From: Selaginella moellendorffii
Lineage: Eukaryota > Plantae > Lycopodiophyta
NCBI RefSeq assembly: GCF_000143415.4
Contig: NW_003314543.1
Span: forward strand, 1 to 14,116
Length of the DNA stretch: 14,116 bases
Direction: 5' to 3'
Under the pieces are notes generated by a model, which was given only the letters and a program-made list of their open reading frames with translations, made no database searches and had not been told where the DNA came from. This document shows, piece after piece, positions 1-14,116 of the stretch. A program made the translations under genes and the position numbers. The number at the start of each line of letters is the position of its first letter. Within the stretch, counting starts at the first letter, position 1.

Positions 1-491
1 TTTAGGGGGATCCCAAAATTTCCAACTTTTGCTATGCCAATGATCTAAAACTTGGAATAATAATAATAATAATACTCAAGAATCTTTGTATATTTTTCAA
101 AATCTAAACTTTTTCATCTAATATGGGGTCAAAATAAATTAGATTAAAATGGTGTTTAACACCTAGATTAAGAATGAATATCTCAAAATCGAGTGCTTAA
201 CTGCTACATGGAGGAAAACACACCTTAGTCGTTAATGCAAATCAGGCTTTACTGCATACAAGTATCTAGGTATCTGGATAGGTGGTACATGTGTTAACAT
301 AAAGCATCCCACCTAGATCTCTATGATGTTCGGTGTGCCCCAAGTTTTGGTGCAGCTGTAAATCTCTTTTTAACCTTTAACCTTTATACTTTGAAATTAT
401 GGTCTAAAAAAATATTCTCAGAATAACCTTTAATTTTGTGTCATACGAAATAATATATTAAAGAAGATAGCTCACCTTGGTGCAACATGGC

Positions 492-724
492 TGTTAAGCG
501 CCAGCTTTGACTACGTGGTCAATGTCAGTCAAAGGGAGGCTCAAGGGTATATTAAGGCATGTTAGGGTAAGGGACTTAACCTACCCTAGAGCCCACAGTG
601 GAGCGGCGGCGCAGTGGAGCTTTTGAGGTAGCTCGGGGGTGGTTAGGTGGTGACGAACCTCAAGACGTGGCGTAGCATAGTCTAAGGCAACTAGATCTCT
701 ATCTTTTTGCACCGGATCATAACA
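492..724 (+). repeat. 5' LTR of gypsy element
   Basis: TGTTAAGCG...GGATCATAACA. Ungapped match to 5174-5406 with 14 substitutions (11 transitions, 3 transversions). TATA-like TATATTAA at 548-555. Confidence 0.96.
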
Positions 725-725
725 T

Positions 726-736
726 TGGTATCAGAG
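726..736 (+). promoter_or_regulatory. Primer binding site (tRNA-iMet) of gypsy element
   Basis: TGGTATCAGAG one base after the LTR-terminal CA, the canonical plant initiator-Met PBS. Confidence 0.95.
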
Positions 737-748
737 GAGTTGGTTGCA

Positions 749-3700
749 ATGGCCGACCAAGCTGAATGCTAGAATCCTATCGTCGATGGTGGTGCCGACG
801 ATGGTGCCGACGAAGCTGTGGAGATTTGGACCATTCAAGATGTGGTTCATGAGCTACGAGCCCTTAATAAAAATCAGCAAGAGATGCAAGACGAGATGCA
901 TGGCATGATGGATACCATGCGTGGGTGTGTTGAGGCATTCGAGGTTGGACGAGGTAGCGCTCCAAGTAAGCCTTCTTTGGTAGATCAACTCAAGATTCCA
1001 ACTTTTTCTAGTGATGGTGGTGTGGACGAGTGTCTCGCTTGGCTAGCCAATGTGAAGAAGTTCTTGGCTGCTAGAGGAACTCTAGATGCAGAGGCTTTAG
1101 AGGCTATTCTGATGGTTTTACGTGATGCGGGTCTTCGATGGTGGAATTGGCTTGAGGAGTCCTGTGTTGCGGATAAGAAACCACCAGTGTCTGCCATGGA
1201 TGAATTTGAGGCTGCTTTCCATTTATGTTTTTCCCCTCATTAAGATGTGGAGAATGCTCGTACGGAACTTCGACATTTCCAGCAAGGGAAAATGACGCTC
1301 GGGGACTATATTGAGAAGCTTACTCGCTTGATTAGTCGTGTTCCAACGAAGGATCCAGATCAGAACAAGTCCTACTTCATTGATGGCCTACATAGTGAGA
1401 GCATGCGGCAACACTTGTGTCATTTTCAGCCTACAAAGAGTTTGGAGGAGCTCTTTGATGCAGCTCGTCAACTTGACAATGACAAGCATAAGTCTCGCAA
1501 GCGTTCGCGGAGTCCTTCTGTCGAGAATCGTTGTGATGATTGCCGTGGACACAAGGATGGGAACAAGCATCACAAGTTGAAGTCGGTGGTGACTACTTTA
1601 GATGCAAAGGGGTCCAAGAAGCAGAAGTTCTTTGTGAAGAATTATAGACAGGGTTGTCATCATTGCGGTGAACTTAGACACTACAAGGCTGATTGTCTGC
1701 AGTTGAAGAACAAGTAGCAGGACAAAAAGAATGGCCAATCTTCTTCTCACGGTAAGTCAAATACTAAAAAGTTGCAAACTTTGCAGCGTGAGGATGAGGA
1801 GAACAACCATTCCGGTCGGAGGAAGCGACTTTCGATCGTTGCTCGTCAACTCAACTGTATGTGGAACAAGATGGAGCTCAAGGATACGCGTGAATCAACT
1901 TTAATGCTGGAGGGCGTGTTCTGTGGCGATCCAGTGGGGATTTTACTGGATAGTGGGAGTGATGACAACTTTGTTTCAGCAAAGTTTATTGCGGAGTATG
2001 GCCTGGTCACACACGGCGTTCTTCCATACACAGTGGAAGGTGTAGCTACCTCTACTCAACATTTCGATGCTTGTGTCGAGGAGCTGGAAGTGTTGGTTGG
2101 CAAAACCACACTTGTGAAGACTTTTTATCTCGCGGATATCCATCGTGTGGATCTCATCCTTGGGATGCCATGGTTGGTGAAGGTGGATCCAGAGATAAAG
2201 TGGAGTATTAAGCGTATCTCGCTGGAGTATGGTGGCGTTAAAGATGTGTGGTTTGGCGAGGGCGTTCAACCACCAGTTGTTATGCTCTCTGCTACATCTT
2301 TGAAGTGGGCTTGTCGTAATGGAAAAGCACTTTCAAGTTACTTGTTGTTTGTTCGTGACTTGGGGGACCAAGGCACGTGTGGGGGAGAAGTAGCAGTACG
2401 GGATGTACTTGATGAGTTTTCTGATGTTTTTCCATCTGAACTTCCTCATGGATTGCCTCCATTACGAGGTGTGGAGCATGGGATTACATTGGAGCCGGGG
2501 ACGCGGCCAATTTACCGGCGCCCATTTCGGTTAAGTTATGCGGAGGAGCAAGAAGTCAACGACAAGTCAAGGAGTTACTTGAGTTTGAATTCATTCAGCC
2601 AAGTAAGTCTCCATTTGGTGCTCCGGTCTTGCTTGTGAAGAAGAAGGACGGTTCAATGCGAATGTGTATTGACTACCGCGCTTTGAACAAAAAGACAGTG
2701 AAGGATAAGATGCCGATGCCACGTGTGGATGATATCCTAAACAAGCTTGGTGAAGCCCGAGTGTTTACCAAGATTGATCTGAGGAGTGGATATCATCAGA
2801 TTGCAATGGATGATGCATCTATCTCCAAGACGGCATTCAACACAAGCTTTGTACATTTTGAGTTTACAGTTATGCCGTTTGGTTTGACGAATGCACCGGC
2901 CATATTTACTCGGTTGATGACGGAGGTATTTGGGCATTATCTTCATGAGTTTGTGGAGATTTTCTTGGACGATATTCTTGTTTTTAGCAAGAATATGGAG
3001 GAGCATAGGGTGCATTTGCGCAAGGTTCTTTTGTTACTTCGAGACAGCAAACTTTATGCGAAGAAGAGCAAATGTGAATTTGCAAAGTCGGAGGTGGAAT
3101 ATCTAGGCCATATTGTGACATCTAAGGGTGTCAAGACGGATCCAAGGAAGGTGGCTGTGGTGGAAAACTGGCCTACACCGACTACAGTGGCCGAGTTGCG
3201 CAGTTTTCTTGGTATGGCTAGTTACTACCGACGTTTCTAGCATAAGTTTGCAGAGGTGGCTATTCCTTTGACGCGGATGCTACGCAAGAATGTGCCATTC
3301 AAGTGGAAGACGCCACAAGAGGAGAGTTTTGTGGCGCTGAAACGATTGTTGAGCGAGGCTCCAGTGCTTCGCATTGTTGATCCATCGAAACCTTACGAGG
3401 TGACATGCGATGCGAGTGGTTATGCACTGGGAGGAGTTCTCATGCAAGAGGGACAGCCTATTGCATATGAGAGTCGAACTTTGAATTCCGTAGAGCAACG
3501 CTATTCCACATATAAGTAAGAGTTACTCTCTATTGTTCATGCTTTGTGGACGTGGCGGCACTATCTTTATGGTGCAGTGTTTGTAGTGTTAACAGATCAC
3601 AAACCACTTGTGTATCTTTTCACACAGAAGGAGTTGAACACTAGGCGAGCTCGTTGGATGGTCAAACTCATGGAGTTTGGGGAGTTTCCTATTGAGCATC

Positions 3701-5099
3701 ATCTGGGAAAATCAAATGTGGTGGCAGATGCTTTATCTTGTGTTTGTCATGTGACAATGTTACAAACACGATTTTGTCATCATTTGAGTAAGGTGGTCAG
3801 CGAGTTTGGGCAGTTGGTTGAGCATGCTCAGGCTTAGAATGCTGAGGTGGCCTCTTTGCGAGACTAGATGGAAGCTCCTTTCTCATTGGTGGATGGGATT
3901 CTCTACTACAATGGCTGTGTATATTTGCCACGGGTGGATGCGTTAATTACTCAAGTTTTATTCCACTATCATGATTGTCTAGAGGCCAGTCATTTTGGGG
4001 GGAAGAAGATGTATGAGTTGATAAAGCGCAACTTTTATTGAAGGAATATAAAGGCTGATATCCTCAAGTATTGTAAATCATGCAAGCTTTATCAGCGGGT
4101 TAAGGTGCTATGGGAGAAGCTAGGGGGACTTTTGCAACCTTTACCTATTCCTCAAAGCCGTTGGTGTAGTATCTCTATGGACTTCATCACTTGTTTGCCA
4201 CAAACACAAAGGCAAAAAGAGCAAGTATGGGTCATAGTGGATCGGTTGACAAAGTATGTGCGGTTGTTGGCTCTTCGGAAGACTGTCACTGCCTCAGACT
4301 TGGCTGCGTTTACTTGGAGAAGGTTTTTTCTGATTTTGGTTTGCCGGAGGATATCATTAGTGATTGAGATTCAAAGTTCACTAGTGGATTTTGGAAAAGC
4401 TTTGCAAAGGTTATGCAAGTGACTTTGAAACTCTCGAGTGGAGATCATCCTCAGATGGATGGGCAAACCGAGCGTGTGAATCAGGTGGTGGAGGATATGC
4501 TACATTGTAGCATTGGTCAAAGGCAAGGACAATAGGATCTATATCTTCCATTGTTGCAATTTGCTTACAACAATAGCCAACACAGTGGAACCAAACTCAG
4601 TCCTTATTTTGCTATGTTTGGAAGGCATCCTTGAATAGCGGTGGAGTTGGGTTTGCATTTGAGTAAGGATGTTTGAGATAAGCTTGATTCCAAGGTGACT
4701 GATTTGGCCACAAAACTTGATGAGATTTTGGTGGTGTGCAAACAGAATTTGCAAGCAGCTCAGGATAGAGTAGAGAAGTTTGCCAATGAGCATCGCTAAT
4801 TCCGGGAATATAAGGTGGGTGATCCCGTCTTTGTGCGCGTGATCTTTCCGTCAAGTGAGTGGCAGAACACCTTGGTGCCTTTACGGACAGGGAAGAGTGA
4901 TAAGCTTTCCCATCGATATGCTGGTCCATATGAAGTGTTGGAGCACATTGGTAAAGCGGCTTATCAGGTGCGGCTGCCAGCTGGGGTGAAAATTCATCTA
5001 GTATTTTATGTCAGCCAGTTGAAAGGTGTACTATCTCAGAGTGATAGGCCCAATGCCTCCTTGATGTATACGGCTGTGGAAGATGGACCAGGAGCTTGA
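749..5099 (+). pseudogene. gag-pol polyprotein pseudogene (gag with CCHC knuckle, aspartic protease, RT, RNase H, integrase with GPY/F)
   Basis: ATG 749 is in frame with ORFs 818, 1247 and 1772. Motifs: CHHCGELRHYKADC (1655-1696); LLDSGSDDNF (D at 1949); RT KKKDGSMRMCIDYRALN...FLDD (2962-2973); RH CDASGYALGGVL...TDHKPL...NVVADALS; IN SMDFITCLP/IVDRLTK/HPQMDGQTERVNQ; RYAGPYEV. Premature stops at 770, 1241, 1715, 3238, 3517, 3835 and others; 1-bp deletions near 2558 and 4308. Confidence 0.95.
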
Positions 5100-5160
5100 G
5101 TAGGGTTCCCCAGAAAGGGTGATCACCGGTACAACTCGTCCTTGGGACAAGGACTTTGTT

Positions 5161-5172
5161 GGGGGGAAAGAA
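5161..5172 (+). promoter_or_regulatory. Polypurine tract of gypsy element
   Basis: GGGGGGAAAGAA immediately 5' of the 3' LTR. Confidence 0.93.
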
Positions 5173-5173
5173 T

Positions 5174-5406
5174 TGTTAGGCGTCAGCTTTGACTATGTGG
5201 TCAATGTCAGTCAAAGGGAGGCTCAAGGTTATATTAAGGCATGTTAGGGTAAGGGACTTAACCTACCCTAGGGCTCACAGTGGAGCGGCAGCGCAGTGGA
5301 GCTTTTGAGGTAGCTCGGGGGTGGTTGGGTGGTGAGGAACCTCAAGAGGTGGCGTAGCATAGTCTAGGGCGACTAGATCTCTGTCTTTTTGCGCCGGATC
5401 ATAACA
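5174..5406 (+). repeat. 3' LTR of gypsy element
   Basis: TGTTAGGCG...GGATCATAACA, ~94% identical to 492-724. Confidence 0.96.
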
Positions 5407-5412
5407 TTGCAA

Positions 5413-5516
5413 TGTTAGGATCTTATCCCTTACACCCTAAGCCAATTGACTAAAGGGGTGATCACTTGATTGGAGGGCCCTTTCTTTATCCTATTATCCT
5501 GACCTGGTGCCTAACA
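5413..5516 (-). repeat. TRIM 3' LTR
   Basis: Follows the minus-strand PPT; 6 substitutions plus one 3-bp indel versus 5703-5803. Confidence 0.92.
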
Positions 5517-5517
5517 A

Positions 5518-5528
5518 TCCTCCCCCTC
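5518..5528 (-). promoter_or_regulatory. TRIM polypurine tract
   Basis: Reverse complement is GAGGGGGAGGA, followed by T and then the LTR TG. Confidence 0.88.
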
Positions 5529-5689
5529 GTCAGGGAATGATCGTCTGCGATCATACTTAGGCCACCATCCGGTCACCATGGTCCTTCTCTTAGGGTCTAC
5601 CAAACCTTGGTTCTCCCTCTAGATCCACCATGCTAAATATTCCTTTAGAATATTCCTCCCCCACTCGTCAGCCACGAGAATCGAACTGG

Positions 5690-5701
5690 GCTCCGATACC
5701 A
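5690..5701 (-). promoter_or_regulatory. TRIM primer binding site (tRNA-iMet)
   Basis: Reverse complement is TGGTATCGGAGC (one mismatch to TGGTATCAGAGC), one base after the LTR CA. Confidence 0.9.
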
Positions 5702-5702
5702 A

Positions 5703-5803
5703 TGTTAGGATCCTATCCCTTACACCCTAAGCCAACTGGCTAAAGGGGTCATCACTTGATTGGGCCCTTTCTTTATCCTATTATCCTGATCTAGTGCCTA
5801 ACA
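5703..5803 (-). repeat. TRIM 5' LTR
   Basis: Precedes the minus-strand PBS; reads TGTTAGGCACTAG...GGATCCTAACA on the minus strand. Confidence 0.92.
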
Positions 5804-5808
5804 ATAGC
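5804..5808. repeat. Putative right TSD (ATAGC) matching ATGGC at 487-491, flanking gypsy and TRIM jointly
   Basis: 4/5 match, one G>A transition, each copy directly abutting an outer LTR terminus. Confidence 0.7.
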
Positions 5809-6369
5809 TGCCAAGCAATGGTTTCTTCATTCACCCACACTTTCTTGGAATGTTCAAGATATAAGGTGCCTCTAGCAGCCAGATCATCATTGTGTCCTTG
5901 GATGTTATTTATGGAAATAGTGTGGATTTCCACACTAAAGATGTTACAATTGATCAAGTTTGGTCAACACCTCTTAGTCTAGTTATTTTCAACAGTTATA
6001 TCTTCTTTCCATAAAAGCATAGATACCAGTGACAAATTTATTATTATTGAGTTTAATTTTATGGTTGTGGAGAATCTCTAAGAAGAAAAAGATTTCTGTC
6101 TTCATCACTTTTGAAGGTTTAATACCTTCAATCTAGAATTGAGCCCAACAATGGCAAGAGAGTTTATATGGAGTGAACTAATCTAGGTTTGGGTTTGGCT
6201 TAAGATCACTTATCCTTAACCATATCTAAACTTAGATAATGAAAGGATAATCCAAGCACTTAGCCAAAAGCCATAAACATCATAAACACCTATTCCATCG
6301 CTTTGTTAATTTCTGGAAGATTGGTTTGTTGAATGTTATGCTAAACCTTATAAACTTATGATCCAACTT

Positions 6370-6910
6370 ATTACAACACCCAATATAATCCCTTCCATTG
6401 AGTAAGGAGCCCCTTAGATTGGGACTGTAATATTAGGAAAATAGACTAATACTAAGTCATTCACTTCATACTCTACAAATGGACAATGATGGGAGTTGTA
6501 GTGTCATTATTGTCCCACTTATGCATGGCTAAGTGTTTAGTAGACTCTTCTTGGATGAGGGGAATAATGCACATTATATACTAATATCAAGATTTAGCAT
6601 CAGTAGCTCATGATAATCGTGAAGGTAAACTCAACTCTATTGGTAGTATTAGATTATGATCATATAAAAGTTTATATAGTGAAACACCAATAAAACGCTA
6701 TACCCTTGTTATATATGCATACTGAAGAAATAACAAATACTTTGCAATCATCCCTTTAAAATTCTAAACAAGCTGTTCTACCAAGCCATTTGTTTGTGGA
6801 TGATAAACACTTGTGAAAGTGTGGCGTATCCACTACCGTAAAACATTGAATTATTATCTGAGAGAATTCACTCCAGACAAGAATGTTGGAACACCATTTG
6901 ATTGAGGAAG
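6370..6910 (-). pseudogene. Heavily decayed gypsy integrase fragment (older element)
   Basis: Minus-strand translation gives ILSDNNSMF, HTFTSVYHPQTNGLVEQLV*NFK, YAY...GVSLYKLLY.H..ILPIELSLP, EYEVNDLVLVY and LLTQWKG, which fit the IN core and GPY/F region. Confidence 0.8.
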
Positions 6911-6939
6911 AAGTACCTAATAGTACTGAATGAAGGAAT

Positions 6940-7155
6940 GGGCTACTAAATGAAACAATGGAGCCAAACTCCTAAATATGGAGCAGAGGAGTGAAGGAAT
7001 TGAAGTATAGAGCAATTCCCAAACATACAACCCAAGGAGTGAAGGGACAGAAGTACTGAGTGACCTTTGAATAGTCTTAGAACATCTAGCATCCCAATGC
7101 TAGGATCGGCATCCGAAATAAAGCCAAACGGAGTCTGGTGCTATTTTAGCATATT
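6940..7155 (+). repeat. Unclassified repeat 'R', copy 1, 5' part
   Basis: Aligns almost ungapped (roughly 70-75% by eye) to the reverse complement of ~7914-8130. Confidence 0.8.
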
Positions 7156-8222
7156 TGTTGTGAATGTGACTTTAGGTATCAAAAGTTATATATCGGCTAG
7201 TCCTTTCTGATATTCTTTCCTTACTGCCACGACAGCAGGAGGTCGGTATTGCTGGACCCTTTATTAGTTTCCACCTAAGCTAGTTGAGAAACTAATCATC
7301 ACATGTGCACTAAAACTAGAAGGGCACTAAAGAAGGAAATCTTAAGTTGTCATTTGTTAAGCAGACTTGACACCATGATGAGAAACTCATGATGTTAACT
7401 TGCACTTGCTAGTGTTGGGAACCCACGCAATATTGAGCTTGGTCCCTCAATATTCGCTAAATGATAGCTTACCGTGTCTGCCAAACACCCTTGCTATCAT
7501 ACCCTTTGTGTTAGTCTCATTCTAGTCCCAAAAGCTATTTATGGAAAGCATCTAGATTTGCTTATTTGACATATTTACAAAATGTGGAGATTGTCCTGAA
7601 CATAATAGTGTTCATCCCGTGTCCAAATTCACCATTTAGGGACATTCCATATTTAATAAGTTTCAAGCTTGTCTCAAAGACTAACTTTTGATACTAAAGG
7701 GGGTTTGGGGTGAAAGCCCAAAGTATGTGTTCCTTAGGGGAGGCTAAGGGGGTGGTTCCAAATGTATAGTAGGGATAGTTGGTAGGTTGGGCATGGCCAA
7801 CCAACCTGAGGCATAGTTTAGCTCCCACTTGCATGCCTGTCCTTGTTCTGCGTCCAGCTTGAAGCTCCACACCATGCTAGCTAGTGGAGTACCCATATCC
7901 TCGCGTTCGACCACTGGTATGTTGAAATAGCACTAGACTCCATTTGGCTCCATTTTGCGTGCTGGCCCTGACATTTGGATGATGGTTGCTCTAGGATTGT
8001 TCCAAGTCACTCCATGCTCCTATCCCTTCGCTCCTTGGGCTATATACTCGGGAGTTGTTCCATGCCCCAGTGCCATTGCTCCTTGGCTCCATACTTGGGA
8101 GTTTGGCACCATTCCTTCATTCAGTGGCCCAAAAGCGTGGCACATAGTGGTTTAGGTTTCACTTTGTGGTTATCCTATGGTAAATCATTATAGAATAAAG
8201 GGTAAAAACCACATGTGCTATA
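7156..8222 (+). mobile_element. Solo-LTR-like insertion splitting repeat R
   Basis: Starts TG and ends TA (probably decayed CA). Flanked by ATATT/ATACT where the uninterrupted R copy has a single ATACC. The first ~137 bp are ~80% identical to the start of the minus-strand LTR at 9429. Confidence 0.62.
7754..8130 (-). repeat. Unclassified repeat 'R', copy 2 (uninterrupted, inverted)
   Basis: Its reverse complement matches 6940-7155 followed contiguously by 8223-8400. Confidence 0.8.
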
Positions 8223-8400
8223 ATACTGATAGCCTAACACGAGCATATGGGTACTCTACCAGTTAGTATGGTGTGGAACTTAGGCTTAGACCCAAGTTAG
8301 ACACAAAATAAAAACAGGTACACAAATGGGAGCTAAACTATACCTCAAGTGTGTTGGCCATACCTAACCTACCCACTATCTTTACTATACATTTGGAACC
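8223..8400 (+). repeat. Unclassified repeat 'R', copy 1, 3' part
   Basis: Inverted match (roughly 75-85% by eye, one small indel) to 7754-7918, e.g. GGGAGCTAAACTAT and ACTATACATTTGGAACC. Confidence 0.8.
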
Positions 8401-8409
8401 CCTTGTAAG

Positions 8410-9190
8410 AGTTTGAGAAAGGACATCAATATCAGTTATAAAACTCCCTGAGTGATAAATAACCTCAAAATTATATATCTGAAGCTTCAAAGCCTATTAT
8501 GTAGTACAAAAAACCAAGTTCTTCTACTTCAATAATGAAATAACCACAATATGATTACCTTATAGTAATGTTTGAGAATTATGCAAGTATGCATGAAATT
8601 TCTTGAAACAATAAATATTTGCTAAACACTCTTCTATTGTGCCTCTACTAGTTATAATGTACAACTAATATATGCAATGGGGTGGTGCTAACCAAGAATA
8701 CTTAGGCATTCTTGCATTAACACACCTCCAAAATTGATATCAAAAGCATCAATGAGCAAAATGAAATAGGTAGGATATGCTAAATTGAAGGAGTTGTTAA
8801 CAGCTTTTTGAGATTTGTAAAGGCCTACTCACAATTCACAGACTAGATAAAAAATAATGTTAACAACTTTAATACGGTGTAATACAATCAAAAAGATAAT
8901 CAACAAAATGATCAAAATATTACATCTTACTTAACAAGCGTTGCACATCATTCACACACTGTAGAGTAGGGAACTTTAAAACTACCACAAATTTGTTAGG
9001 ATCAACTTTCAAACCTTCATAAAAAATGTAGTACCCAAGAGAAGTTTTATCATTAGACCCAAACACACACTTTGACTACTTCAACTTCAAACCAACTTCT
9101 TGTAGGTGATTCAACACCTTATAAACATCATGGATATGCTCCTACGTCCCCTTTTAGTAGATCAAAACAACATTAATGAAGTTAATAGTT
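8410..9190 (-). pseudogene. Heavily decayed gypsy RT (C-terminal part) and RNase H fragment
   Basis: Minus-strand translation gives FINVVLIY...EHIHDVYKVLNHLQEVGLKLK*SKCVFG...LGY...GLKVDPNK...FPT; CE*AFTNLKKLLTTP; FILLIDAFD..FGGVLMQ...HPIAYISCTL; ALKLQIYNFEVIYHSG...DVLS. Confidence 0.85.
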
Positions 9191-9193
9191 ATT

Positions 9194-9429
9194 TGTAGAG
9201 GGTTCCAAATACCAGGCCGAGTATGCTCAATAAGAAACACATAGGAGTTCCAACTTTATATTTATTTGGCATAAGTATATATATGATAACCAATTTCTCA
9301 ACTAGTTTAGGTGGGGATTGATAAAGGATCTAGCAATACCAACCTTCTATTATCGTGGTAGTAAGGAAAGAATATCCAAAAGGACTAATTGATAGGTAAT
9401 TTTTGATACCCACAGTCACATTCGTGACA
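9194..9429 (-). repeat. 3' LTR (~236 bp) of a further LTR element inserted in the old RT
   Basis: Minus strand reads PPT AAGGGGGGGAGAG (9442-9430), then TGTCACG...GGAACCCTCTACA. The RT relic begins right after the CA. Confidence 0.68.
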
Positions 9430-11228
9430 CTCTCCCCCCCTTAGGGAAAATTGATATCCTTGTTAATACATACTATAGTAGAACACTGCCAAAGAAAAAT
9501 CTCTAGAAAAAGTTTATGGTGTTCACATTTTATAAGAAATCCATTAACTTAAATGAGTTTGGGTAACTTTTCTATCTAACGTAAATGCACTACACTCAAA
9601 CACCTTCCAGCCATCACTAAAAAAGAAATCACTAACAGAGTTAGGCATCCTTGCTGCTCTAGGTGTCATCAAGCCTATGAAAGATGATAACCCTTGCTCG
9701 TATGTGGCATAGAGAGCCAACCCTTATGAGCAAAGAAACCAAACCTATTGATAAGGTTTAAATAGACTACTATAAACAGGTAGTTAGAGTTGTTTACATG
9801 GTCACACCCTTTTAAATAAAATAAGAAACATTAAGAGAGAGGCAGGTGATGTGACCAGTTGACAGTAGTTACCCCATGACTAAAGAGCTCACCATACACA
9901 TAAAGTGCTGAAGCCAATCTGCCTATACCAGCCCAAACCCAAAAATAAAAAAATGGACAATATCAAAGTCATAGACAAGAGACTTAATTATCAATGAATA
10001 AATCTTAGATTAGAACACAAAAGTATTCCAACTAAGTTATCATATGATAAACTAATATTAGAGTATAGAAACCACCAAAATCATTATAGGTGAAAGTCAT
10101 AGGATTCACTATCCAATAAAATTCAAAAGCTAGTGTATCATCAAGTATACTCAATAATAAAACTTAACTATAAAAAATTGTAGATAGCATGCTAAGCAAC
10201 TTATGTAAGATAACTCAAAGAACACAAAATATCATTGATTGCCAAGAAAAATGCTCGCAAATGTATCACCCAAAAGAAGTAACATTTAATCTAACAAAAC
10301 CAACTGTAATAATAATCAACAAAATAGAATGAATGTTGTAAAGACTAATAAACACAATATTCATGTTAACTATCATACTAGCCAATTTGAATAGATCTTA
10401 GTTAACAATATTAAGGAATTCAGTATTTTTAAGTAAGAGCTAGTAACTTCCTACTGATGTTTCAAACCCAAAAGACCAATCCAAAGCAAATCACAAAGAA
10501 TATGTGGTAATGTAAAAAGCCAAAAGCCAAAAACCATCAAAGAGAATAATTAACTATTATGAAAGATCATCAATTATCCCATTAATGAAGAGATGCATAA
10601 TCATCATCAAAGAAATAATCCATCATCCCAAAGAATGGTAAATTATTCTATATCAATAATAATCAAACAAAGCCTTTGACAAGGATAATTAATTATTCTA
10701 GATAATATTCAATCATCACTAATAATCGCCAGATGCAAAAACTAACTTCAACAATAAAGCTAATGAGCCAAAATGCCTTCCCCCAACAACGTTTAACAAA
10801 TTGAATAATAAGCATGAAATTTAAAAAACCAGAAGCTCAAAGAAGCCTATAACCAAGTTTCATCTAATAATGATTATGAGTCTTGCATGAACTAATTTTA
10901 ATGCTAAAGAATAAATCATAATACAACCCATAATATCTTTCTCAACATATCTAGAAGCAAAACTTCATAATGCCAAAGCTAATGAATAGCATTTTTGCAT
11001 CAATTCAAAAACTAAGCATAACAAAGCTATGTTCAATAAGTGACCACCAAATTGATCCTCTATAAATTCATCTATAGTAAGATGTAACTCACTTCATAAT
11101 AAGCACAAAAAAATCACTAATGATTGATATATTTATAATTCAAATCCAACAAGGAACCAATATTTTAAAATTAATCACTAACTTTTCCTTTAGCAAGACT
11201 AGTATACCCAATGCAAAGCTCAACCCTT

Positions 11229-11313
11229 ACTAGATAATCTGGTCTAGAATGTAACTAACTCAAACTTGCCACTCAATTGGCTCAATATATTTACTAACTA
11301 GAAAGTGCATGAA
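11229..11313 (+). repeat. ~85-bp direct repeat, copy 1
   Basis: ACTAGATAATCT.GTCTAGAATGTAA.TAACTCAAACTTGCCACTCAATTGG...TTACTAACTAGAAA recurs at 12666-12757. Confidence 0.88.
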
Positions 11314-12665
11314 AGCTCTATTTCGTTAAAGTGGGAATTGTCATTATGCCACTTGTAAAATAAGGTTTCCAAACCTTTATATAGTATATAAATATAACAA
11401 AATTCAACTACATTGAGGCACATGCCATTTTATTTTAAACAAGGAAATATCTACTCAATCACTTCTCCTCCCCCTGCCACTGCTTCACCTCTCTCTTCTC
11501 CTTGTCATCGTCGTCCAATTTCTTTCCATCTTTTTAATATTGGCTCAGTTGCTCCGAGTCTAGGTGGAGCCCAAGTCCCCATTCAATCTTTATTTTCCCC
11601 TTATTAATAAAACAACTTCGTAGACTTCCAATAACATGCTGTAACACTTCTAGTATAATGCAAATCCTCTCAAAGAATTGTCTTTTAATATTAATACAAT
11701 GGCATGGAACCCCATGCCATAATTATTTACATTTTTAAATAAATACATGCCATCTCAGACTGTTATTTTTTGCCTCCAACACCTATACAATAATCTTGGA
11801 ATTTCATCACTCTCCACACTATCAGGATTTAAACCCAATAGTAATGCCATCTCTTCTCTAATACGTCCACACTCATGTTCAGTGGTCGAAGAACCCATCT
11901 GGTTGAAGATACCTTACTCAATATTCGAGACCAATCCAACACTATAAACTAAATGCAACCAAATGATATTGACAAAGATGGAATTGATATACTAACATGG
12001 AAAAATTATGAAAGTTTAATGATACGATCCTTTGCAACACCATTTTGTAAAGCAAGTCTATCATTGTTAAATCATTATCAAGCAAAGCAAGTGTCAATAG
12101 TCTTTAACAAAGTCTATTAGCAATCAAAAACTATAAGATGGATTCATTTTGGTACACAACCTTTTCATAGATAAAAATATAATATAGGTACTAACACCTC
12201 AACTTTAAACAACTAAGTTGATAATCACTATCTTTAACAAAGATGTAAGGCCACCAAGACCAAATCAAGATTAATAAAAGCTCATTACTTTTATAGAGTT
12301 TAATAAAATGTAAAGTGCAATATGCCACCAAGAATAATGCTATAAAAAAAATATACAAGGGTCACCTTTCTAGAAAAGCATAATACCCACTTTTTTACAC
12401 TAACTCTAGAGTCTATCCAACTTAATTGCTTTAGCCCCAAGACTCATTATCACTTTCGGGCCACATCATATAAATTATATACTAAGGTTTAAGCCAACCA
12501 AAGTCAACTCTAACCTCTTCATTAGTTTCTATTGACTTATAAAAATGGAATAGTTTTCGAGAAAAATAATCAAAAAATCAACCATTGGAAAAACCTAAAA
12601 TAAATTGTGGAAAATTTTTCATATTATAAAAAGAATCACTCTTAGTCTAGAAATATAAATGAAGA

Positions 12666-12757
12666 ACTAGATAATCTTGTCTAGAATGTAATTAACTCAA
12701 ACTTGCCACTCAATTGGTTTGAATGTCAATATAGTTACTAACTAGAAAATACATGAA
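12666..12757 (+). repeat. ~85-bp direct repeat, copy 2
   Basis: About 90% identical to 11229-11313, with a ~7-bp indel. Confidence 0.88.
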
Positions 12758-12782
12758 TATCAATAATACAGCCAAAATTTCA

Positions 12783-12808
12783 TGTGTGTGCGTGTGTGTG
12801 TATATATG

Positions 12809-12848
<40 letters not shown>
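12783..12848. repeat. (TG)n/(TA)n compound microsatellite
   Basis: TG repeats at 12783-12800; pure TA run at 12814-12848 continuing into the gap. Confidence 0.97.
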
Positions 12849-12948
12849 NNNNNNNNNNNNNNNNNNNNNNNNNNNNNNNNNNNNNNNNNNNNNNNNNNNN
12901 NNNNNNNNNNNNNNNNNNNNNNNNNNNNNNNNNNNNNNNNNNNNNNNN
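12849..12948. other. Assembly gap (100 N)
   Basis: Exactly 100 Ns, probably a placeholder of unknown true size. Confidence 0.99.
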
Positions 12949-13582
12949 CAAAAAACAAGACTAACTAGCAACTCAAAATCATCACAATTTATAATTCTAT
13001 AAAATCACAGAGGTGAGGGTGCCAATCCCCTTACCTATAGCATGTAAAGTGATCACTACTACACCCCCTTTTAACACACTTATGAGTGATTACAAATGTA
13101 TAGGGTAAAATATGTTATTATACCTTCTAACATATGTTATACATTTAGATTAATCAAGTATAAATATATTTAAAAAATTTAAAATTTCTTAAACAGCTAT
13201 CTTCTGGATATTTATAAATTATAAAAATGTTTACAGTTATAAACTTTCTTAAGCACCCATTCTTGCCATAAATAATCATATTACCTTACTGTGCTGGGTT
13301 GAGTGATGGGCTCTCCTATCATATATGTGATGATAGGAGAGTGGCAATTCTTTGCTGTCCTGCTTGTACTGTAGGATGTGGTGATGAAATTGAGAGAAAG
13401 AATGAAGGGAAGATTTTTCTTCATTTCATTCATTAGAACTCTTGATTTCTCTTGTCTAAACTTTGCATAGAAAACTCTACTCTAAACTTTATATGAAAAC
13501 AAACACATGAGTTACTACATTGTAAGGAAATGAGTGGAACTTAAGGGCTTCGTGTCTTTATTATGTTAAATTGTTTATGAAC

Positions 13583-14107
13583 TTATAGCAATAATGTTGG
13601 TGTAGGAGCTGGGCCTGGTGCTGATGCTGGTGATTCTGGTGCCAATGCTGGAGGTGTTGGTACTGGTAGTCACGATAGGGATGGTGTTGGTGAAAGTGAA
13701 GGTGTTGGTGTTGGTGATAGTGGTGGTGGTTGTGTTCTAGGTGGAGTTCTTGGTCGTGGTGGTAGAGGCATTCTTGGTCGTGGTGGGGGTGGTCTTCTAG
13801 GTGGTGGTGGTGGTGGAGGACTTGGTGGTGGTGGAGGTGAACAAGCATTTGGAGTAAAATAATAGGGTCCACAAGTGAACTTATTATTTCCATTATTGAT
13901 GCATGTTCTTAAGGATTGGCCACTTGATCCACCATTTATGTCTGTTAAGAAAGAACACCCTCGGGGTGCTCTACTCGTATCGACACTCACTCGGCAACTC
14001 TCAATATCTGTTCCAGTCTTCACTAATTTAAAGATATTAAAGTATCCTCTATTATTTGTAAATGATGAATCACTGTCTCTTGGACAAACCAGAGTTTACC
14101 TTGGCAT
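13583..14107 (-). pseudogene. Last exon of a Pollen Ole e 1/PAC-domain protein with extensin/AGP-like Pro-rich tail; apparently disabled
   Basis: Acceptor TTTCAG|AT at 14108/14107. Reads xAKV/TLVC...TNNRGYF...CRVSV...C...TDINGGSSG..L...GPYYFTPNAC (PAC-like), then SP5, SP7 and PTP repeats. An extra base in the T run at 14095-14097 breaks the frame. TGA at 13670-13672 is followed in frame by 28 more Pro/Ala-rich codons to TAA at 13583-13585. The 5' exon lies outside the window. Confidence 0.78.
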
Positions 14108-14116
14108 CTGAAAGAT

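Follow-up and report, generated by a model that had tools for sequence, protein, structure and literature searches.

A gypsy retrotransposon and a TRIM joined tail to tail within one target site duplication in Selaginella moellendorffii, probably through a single integration of two cDNAs

The window analysed here, a stretch of 14,116 nucleotides from the spikemoss Selaginella moellendorffii (assembly GCF_000143415.4, contig NW_003314543.1, positions 1 to 14,116 of the forward strand), contains two different long terminal repeat (LTR) retrotransposons lying back to back, a Ty3/gypsy element on the plus strand (492-5406) and a terminal-repeat retrotransposon in miniature (TRIM) on the minus strand (5413-5803). 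The pair is in tail-to-tail orientation with the 3' LTRs facing each other, and the ends of the unique 5' regions (U5) of the two elements meet across the 6-bp sequence TTGCAA (5407-5412). An earlier note on this DNA, made from the letters alone, had read the pair as one joint insertion of two complementary DNA (cDNA) molecules, and its coordinates and counts were all reproduced. The parts of the locus are listed below, where "empty site" refers to the same locus without the pair, as found in public sequencing runs.

487-491, no strand: left copy of the target site duplication (TSD), 5 bp, ATGGC; present once in the empty site
492-724, plus strand: gypsy 5' LTR, 233 bp, TGTTAAGC...ATAACA; aligned to 5174-5406
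725-737, plus strand: gypsy spacer T (725) and primer binding site (PBS) TGGTATCAGAGG (726-737); read from the sequence
773-5096, plus strand: gypsy gag-pol remnants; Pfam matches on open pieces
5161-5173, plus strand: gypsy polypurine tract (PPT) GGGGGGAAAGAA and a T; adjoins the 3' LTR
5174-5406, plus strand: gypsy 3' LTR, 233 bp; from the LTR-LTR alignment, with contigs running off after 5406
5407-5412, no strand: U5-U5 junction TTG-CAA, 6 bp; absent from the empty site
5413-5516, minus strand: TRIM 3' LTR, 104 bp; aligned to 5703-5803, contigs of other copies diverging after 5516
5517-5528, minus strand: TRIM PPT GAGGGGGAGGAT in minus-strand reading; read from the sequence
5689-5702, minus strand: TRIM spacer T (5702) and PBS TGGTATCGGAGCC (5701-5689); minus-strand reading
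5703-5803, minus strand: TRIM 5' LTR, 101 bp; from the LTR alignment, contigs of other copies diverging at 5803/5805
5804-5808, no strand: right copy of the TSD, ATAGC; differs from the left copy and from the empty site by a single G>A change

The gypsy element is 4915 bp long and is built as an LTR retrotransposon, with direct LTRs of the form TGTT...AACA, the 5' one followed by a PBS and the 3' one preceded by a PPT. Its two LTRs align with 14 mismatches in 233 positions (11 of the 14 being transitions) and zero gaps. Among plant PBS sequences, TGGTATCAGAGG is of the initiator methionine tRNA (tRNA-iMet) type. The interior is degenerate, with numerous stops and frameshifts, and Pfam matches on its open pieces (PF03732, PF08284, PF00078 at 7e-40, PF17919/PF17917, PF17921 and PF24626, the integrase core PF00665 being a weak match below the cut-off) give the domain order gag, aspartic protease, reverse transcriptase (RT), RNase H, integrase zinc finger, weak integrase core and SH3-like C-terminal domain, the last of these being of the Tf2-1 type. 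The succession of protease, RT, RNase H and integrase, as for Ty3/gypsy elements, is found along 1718-5096, in pieces that are all broken by stops and with a weak core. Other genomic copies of the gypsy are represented by 11 contigs of one sequencing run (X1, described below) which diverge right after 5406 (agreement 0.45), and the LTR end of the family is therefore placed at 5406. Among protein homologues of the 266-aa RT piece there were no relatives of the same family and no match above 69% identity; in a protein atlas the piece was placed only to "Streptophyta". Exact-pattern searches of viral and metagenome collections gave zero matches for the gypsy LTR-PBS sequence and for the junction.

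The second element fits the description of a TRIM, having short LTRs (about 100-250 bp in such elements), a total length below 1 kb, a PBS, a PPT and no coding sequence. It measures 391 bp, and its LTRs of 101 and 104 bp align with 6 mismatches and one 3-bp indel. The interior of 186 bp includes the PBS and PPT and has zero open reading frames (ORFs) of at least 60 aa, and the 3' LTR follows directly upon GAGGGGGAGGA and a T. An 18-mer across the TRIM LTR and PBS gave 14 loci in exact-pattern scans, all of them chance matches and none with a TRIM.

Neither element has a TSD of its own. For the gypsy, no 4-6 bp duplication is present at its two borders (ATGGC vs. TTGCA, matching at 2 of 5 positions), and the duplication that it does border is held in common with the TRIM, whose own flanks are TGCAA and ATAGC. 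Flanks that are mismatched for each element alone agree at four of five positions when the two are taken as a unit, namely ATGGC (487-491) and ATAGC (5804-5808); at the base composition of the window, two 5-mers agree at four or more of five positions by chance with P = 0.019. Inside this 5-bp duplication both outer ends are precise ends of the unique 3' region (U3), starting with TG, and the host bases that precede the gypsy TGTT are GC, as opposed to the element's own AT, with zero bases kept from the PPT side.

The inner junction is equally specific. Neither element is nested in the other: the two abut, and the six intervening bases come from neither of the LTRs and are not part of the host site. 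The TTG of the spacer recurs at 725-727 as the bases after the gypsy 5' LTR, and the CAA recurs at 5700-5702, as the reverse complement of the TTG that follows the TRIM 5' LTR. By chance, both expected trinucleotides would make up a 6-bp spacer with a probability of 4^-6; when the six bases may be split in any way, the figure is no more than about 0.002. The U5-U5 junction reads AACA-TTG-CAA-TGTT (motif AACATTGCAATGTT) and is a perfect 16-bp palindrome, TAACATTGCAATGTTA, because the LTR ends are alike and the bases after the LTRs are alike too. That the elements lack separate TSDs while ATGGC and ATAGC border the pair, and that the spacer consists of the post-LTR bases of both elements, were claims of the earlier note; both were confirmed from the sequence.

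The form of the locus before insertion was found in public data. Nine public runs of one organism contain part of the stretch, each less than half of the sampled words. Contigs from runs X1, X2 and X3 (sample S1) and X4 (sample S2) were compared with positions 150-6100 of the window (5951 letters), and among the best 15 of 134 joints one leads from 489 directly to 5807, skipping 5317 bases with four letters that fit either side. This joint is present in X1, X2 and X4, and thus in two samples: in X1 as one contig at depth 615 (flanks about 800), in X2 as two contigs at depth 101 (flanks 106 and 62, shorter side 56 letters), and in X4 as one contig at depth 2.1 (flanks about 2, shorter side 43 letters). 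The skipped 5317 bases are made up of the gypsy (4915), the spacer (6), the TRIM (391) and one TSD copy (5). The joined form is ...GGTGCAAC-ATGGC-TGCCAAGC... (CAAC-ATGGC-TGCC), with a single ATGGC and zero TTGCAA. The earlier note had predicted this empty site, and it was found as written; an empty site already holding TTGCAA, which the note had named as speaking against its proposal, is not what these contigs contain. Measured against the empty site, gypsy and TRIM together form a single insertion. Since the empty site has ATGGC once and lacks TTGCAA, there is zero host DNA between the elements, and since it reads ATGGC, the A at 5806 is a later G>A change.

The runs also provide information on the haplotypes involved. 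At flank positions 410, 5853, 5860, 5863 and 5887, the depth of sample S1 is entirely of the other letter (X1 and X2, and X3 where it covers the position), and X4 has the other letter only at 410 and 5853. The flank letters in the runs differ from those of the window, and none of these runs therefore contains the assembled genotype. Between the two samples, too, the right flank differs, so that at least two haplotypes, allelic or belonging to a close relative, carry the empty site.

Several further observations were made on the same contigs. Three joints in X1-X3 (1293/5459, 4307/5593 and 5540/5711) connect gypsy-internal or TRIM sequence with TRIM sequence that runs the opposite way, and correspond to other copies elsewhere in the genome of the run organism, inverted gypsy-TRIM or TRIM-TRIM. 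Summed contig depth in X1-X3 (349-5920) is 1e5 to 3.5e5 over the gypsy, about 1.2e5 over the TRIM interior and about 800 over the flanks; both families are very abundant in the run organism, depth not being equal to copy number. With the insertion removed, a 62-aa minus-strand ORF spans the target site (461-491 joined to 5809-5963) and ends at GTGAG, a possible splice donor, which makes an exon location of the target a possibility; the ORF across the empty site gave zero Pfam matches.

We suggest that an integrase probably inserted the U3 ends of a gypsy and a TRIM cDNA in one event, and that their unprocessed U5 ends were joined blunt to each other. In this scenario the integrase would take the U3 end of each cDNA for one concerted strand transfer into ATGGC, yielding precise TG ends and the 5-bp duplication. 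The U5 ends would remain outside the integrase complex and unprocessed, and therefore the bases that integrase normally removes would be retained: on each end, the T that separates LTR from PBS and two bases copied from the final two nucleotides of the tRNA primer. The U5 ends would then be ligated blunt by host end joining, giving AACA-TTG-CAA-TGTT. This ligation could come before integration, in which case the substrate would be an inverted dimer, already ligated and bearing a U3 end on either side, or after it, as the repair of a chromosome break left by the insertion of two donors. The parts played by integrase and by host end joining are presumed here from their products, and the three bases on both U5 ends would fit one RT/RNase H having made both cDNAs.

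Individual steps have precedents among retroviruses. The U5 end of the cDNA is set by the RNase H removal of the tRNA, HIV-1 keeping the last ribonucleotide, and 2-LTR junctions with unprocessed U5 and PBS sequence do occur (PMC5618025). Junctions of provirus and host may keep the dinucleotide that integrase removes together with 2, 4, 11 or 15 nt of the PBS in proviruses whose opposite end is normal (PMC2797772), and where integrase is limited to inserting one end, the second is joined by enzymes of the host (PMC5041404). The interpretation of the earlier note is upheld as regards the single insertion relative to the empty site, the precise U3 ends and the expected bases on unprocessed U5 ends; as to the order of joining, the sequence would fit ligation before or after integration.

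Among the alternatives, we first consider a chromosome break at which host end joining, independently of integrase, captured two free cDNAs. The capture of Ty1 cDNA at yeast breaks is a known case. The inner junction does look like plain blunt end joining of unprocessed ends, and host-mediated joining of retroviral ends is documented (PMC5041404; PMC2797772). However, each outer end terminates precisely at TG, the gypsy one without any PPT-side bases, and the duplication ATGGC/ATAGC, single in the empty site, is an integrase signature that is unexpected from break repair, which makes this route quite unlikely.

We consider it very unlikely that the inner junction is an assembly error hiding a true locus with more sequence between the LTRs or with one element only. 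Such an error has some footing in that zero reads of the assembled genotype span 5400-5420, the gypsy family is very abundant, and the window has a 100-N gap elsewhere. Yet both outer junctions match one empty site to the base, and the error would need to place the two LTR ends right at the boundaries known for the families and to add exactly the two PBS-side trinucleotides.

A history of separate events is highly improbable, be it two integrations at the same 5-bp site at different times with a later change of the middle TSD, or an inversion or recombination that swapped flanks. Plant LTR elements often undergo unequal recombination and inversion with one another (PMC1950507), but what these produce is not enclosed by a single TSD corresponding to an empty site with one copy, and the sequence common to the two elements amounts to only about 19 nt. 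Sequential hits would leave ATGGC in the middle, and to turn ATGGC into TTGCAA an insertion and three substitutions would be needed, at a divergence of about 6%. Fly double insertions retain a TSD copy between the elements (PMC5932611). Successive insertions at one 5-bp site were accordingly rejected, since ATGGC and not TTGCAA would stand between the elements. Nesting was set aside because it would leave duplicated element sequence. Also rejected were the integration of one cDNA into the other, read-through transcription of the composite, and annealing of PBS tails, after which the junction would hold more PBS bases, whereas TTG-CAA is without microhomology. Copying of a tail-to-tail pair by way of a single RNA is ruled out, since the second element is antisense and offers no R repeat for strand transfer. 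That the composite was formed elsewhere and moved here as a unit is scarcely credible, as it has no direct support (the depth at the junction being inseparable from that of the families), DNA-level duplication does not yield precise TG ends and a 5-bp duplication, and copying through RNA is barred for the reason just given.

The single integration of two cDNAs, which we prefer, must itself be weighed against a number of points. It is seen at one locus, in one copy of each element, and that the normal cDNA ends of the family carry exactly three extra bases is assumed. The inner junction is read from the assembly, and the right TSD copy is off by one base. An allele with a single element may exist beyond the best 15 of the 134 joints. 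Finally, LTR divergence, at 6%, exceeds the divergence of the flanks from the empty haplotypes, which runs from about 1.7% (7/402, two pieces of X4) to about 5% (10/189, one piece of X2). The GC content of the LTRs is 51% as against 34-35% in the flanks, and this tension may reflect either a faster change of the GC-richer LTRs (with their 11 transitions among 14 changes) than of the AT-rich flanks or an old presence/absence polymorphism. As to the relative age of the two elements, LTR divergence is 6.0% for the gypsy (confidence interval (CI) 3.3-9.9%) and 5.9% for the TRIM (CI 2.2-12.5%). The earlier note had read these as consistent with the same age, and while the values are indeed indistinguishable (Fisher P = 1), the argument is a weak one given the small counts and wide intervals.

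The ends of the two elements bear on a possible relation of helper and parasite. The U3 start TGTTAGGC is present in both, the U5 ends (GATCATAACA vs. GATCCTAACA) follow the pattern GATC(A/C)TAACA, and both elements show LTR-T-TGG, with the same one-base spacer and PBS type, and in each a purine tract precedes T-TGTT. Significant similarity between gypsy and TRIM is confined to a stretch of 19 nt at 94.7%, comprising the gypsy U5 end and PBS. Judged from the sequences of one copy each, and with a PBS type that is widespread in plants, the shared ends and the geometry of PBS and PPT would fit a TRIM that uses the integrase and RT of the gypsy lineage. The TRIM may have been copied and carried by proteins of the gypsy family. 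Co-packaging of the two in one particle, which the earlier note had included in its proposal, is a step that we infer, whereas the single-event part of that proposal is supported by the empty site. A more general extension, that the integrase of the gypsy lineage repeatedly joins, in this genome, the ends of two different cDNAs made side by side, appears doubtful to us. If it were true, composites with a shared TSD would record which gene-less elements (TRIMs, Cassandra-like elements) travel with which autonomous element, and mining for such composites would provide a map of helpers and parasites without experiment.

The remainder of the window has features of other kinds. Two 150-nt inverted-repeat arms (7162-7311 and 9274-9423), 79% complementary and 1962 nt apart, enclose a nested foldback (7754-7920 and 8223-8400) with arms of about 170 nt at about 80% and a loop of about 300 nt; the foldback pair resembles a terminal-inverted-repeat DNA transposon or a foldback element, with no clear target duplication at a cursory look. 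A 52-nt direct repeat (11229-11280 and 12666-12717) is 96% identical over copies 1437 nt apart, and the similarity seems to extend with indels. The run of exactly 100 N at 12849-12948, directly behind a (TG)n/(TA)n tract, represents an assembly gap whose size is conventional and not measured. On the minus strand, a 117-aa ORF (13670-14023) has a cysteine-containing first half and a proline-rich tail of the SPPPP type, giving it an extensin-like look; it had zero Pfam matches at E values up to 0.1.

Which elements mobilise TRIMs is still a largely open question. Spikemoss TRIMs have been linked to Ty3/gypsy elements, no autonomous partner of a TRIM had been reported before, and the few that were proposed were proposed from sequence similarity (PMC4717578); the shared insertion described here would provide physical evidence in place of similarity. 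If our reading is correct, the gypsy and TRIM cDNAs coincided in place and time, and one integrase accepted both. These implications have their limits in that they concern one old locus, with an inner junction that comes from the assembly and a link to co-packaging that is inferred. In a full-text literature search we did not find two different LTR elements joined U5 to U5 in one TSD, nor an in vivo two-donor product of two different elements fixed in a plant genome, which is not proof of absence.

Other composite LTR elements share some of these features. The complex insertions described in grasses by Sabot and Schulman (2007; PMC1950507) likewise have two bodies in one 5-bp TSD from one event, and have been read as template switching between co-packaged RNAs. 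They are arranged head to tail with a shared middle LTR (three LTRs in all) and join close relatives of one family, whereas the pair described here is inverted, retains all four LTRs, combines different families and has 6 non-LTR bases between them; of the marks of template switching, the single TSD is present, and the same orientation and the shared LTR are absent. Tandem TRIM arrays and the putative autonomous relatives of TRIMs (Gao et al., 2016; PMC4717578) likewise bear on how TRIMs arise and what mobilises them, but those arrays consist of a single family repeated directly with shared LTRs, unlike the present pair. Multimeric Ty1 cDNA arrays of yeast (Bryk et al., 2001, cited in PMC7524711) also involve more than one cDNA per event, and differ in arising by homologous recombination between LTRs, within one family and in direct orientation.

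Further parallels come from retroviral integration. Aberrant integrations of avian sarcoma-leukosis virus (ASLV) and HIV-1 (PMC5041404; see also PMC2797772) have, as here, one end of the integrase type, while the other carries retained bases and a few bases of the PBS and is joined by the host. In those cases the unprocessed end joins host DNA, often with rearrangements of the host sequence, whereas here the U5 ends of two elements are joined together, the host site is intact and the duplication is the normal 5 bp. If the reading holds, the locus preserves the unprocessed U5 ends of plant retrotransposon cDNAs, marking where RNase H cuts the tRNA primer in this lineage. Concerted integration of two donors by retroviral integrases is a standard in vitro assay. 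As at this locus, two DNA molecules each contribute one end in that assay, often like ends, with a proper duplication. The assay is a test-tube reaction with short donors, whereas the pair in Selaginella would be an in vivo product of such U3-U3 integration, formed from two different elements.

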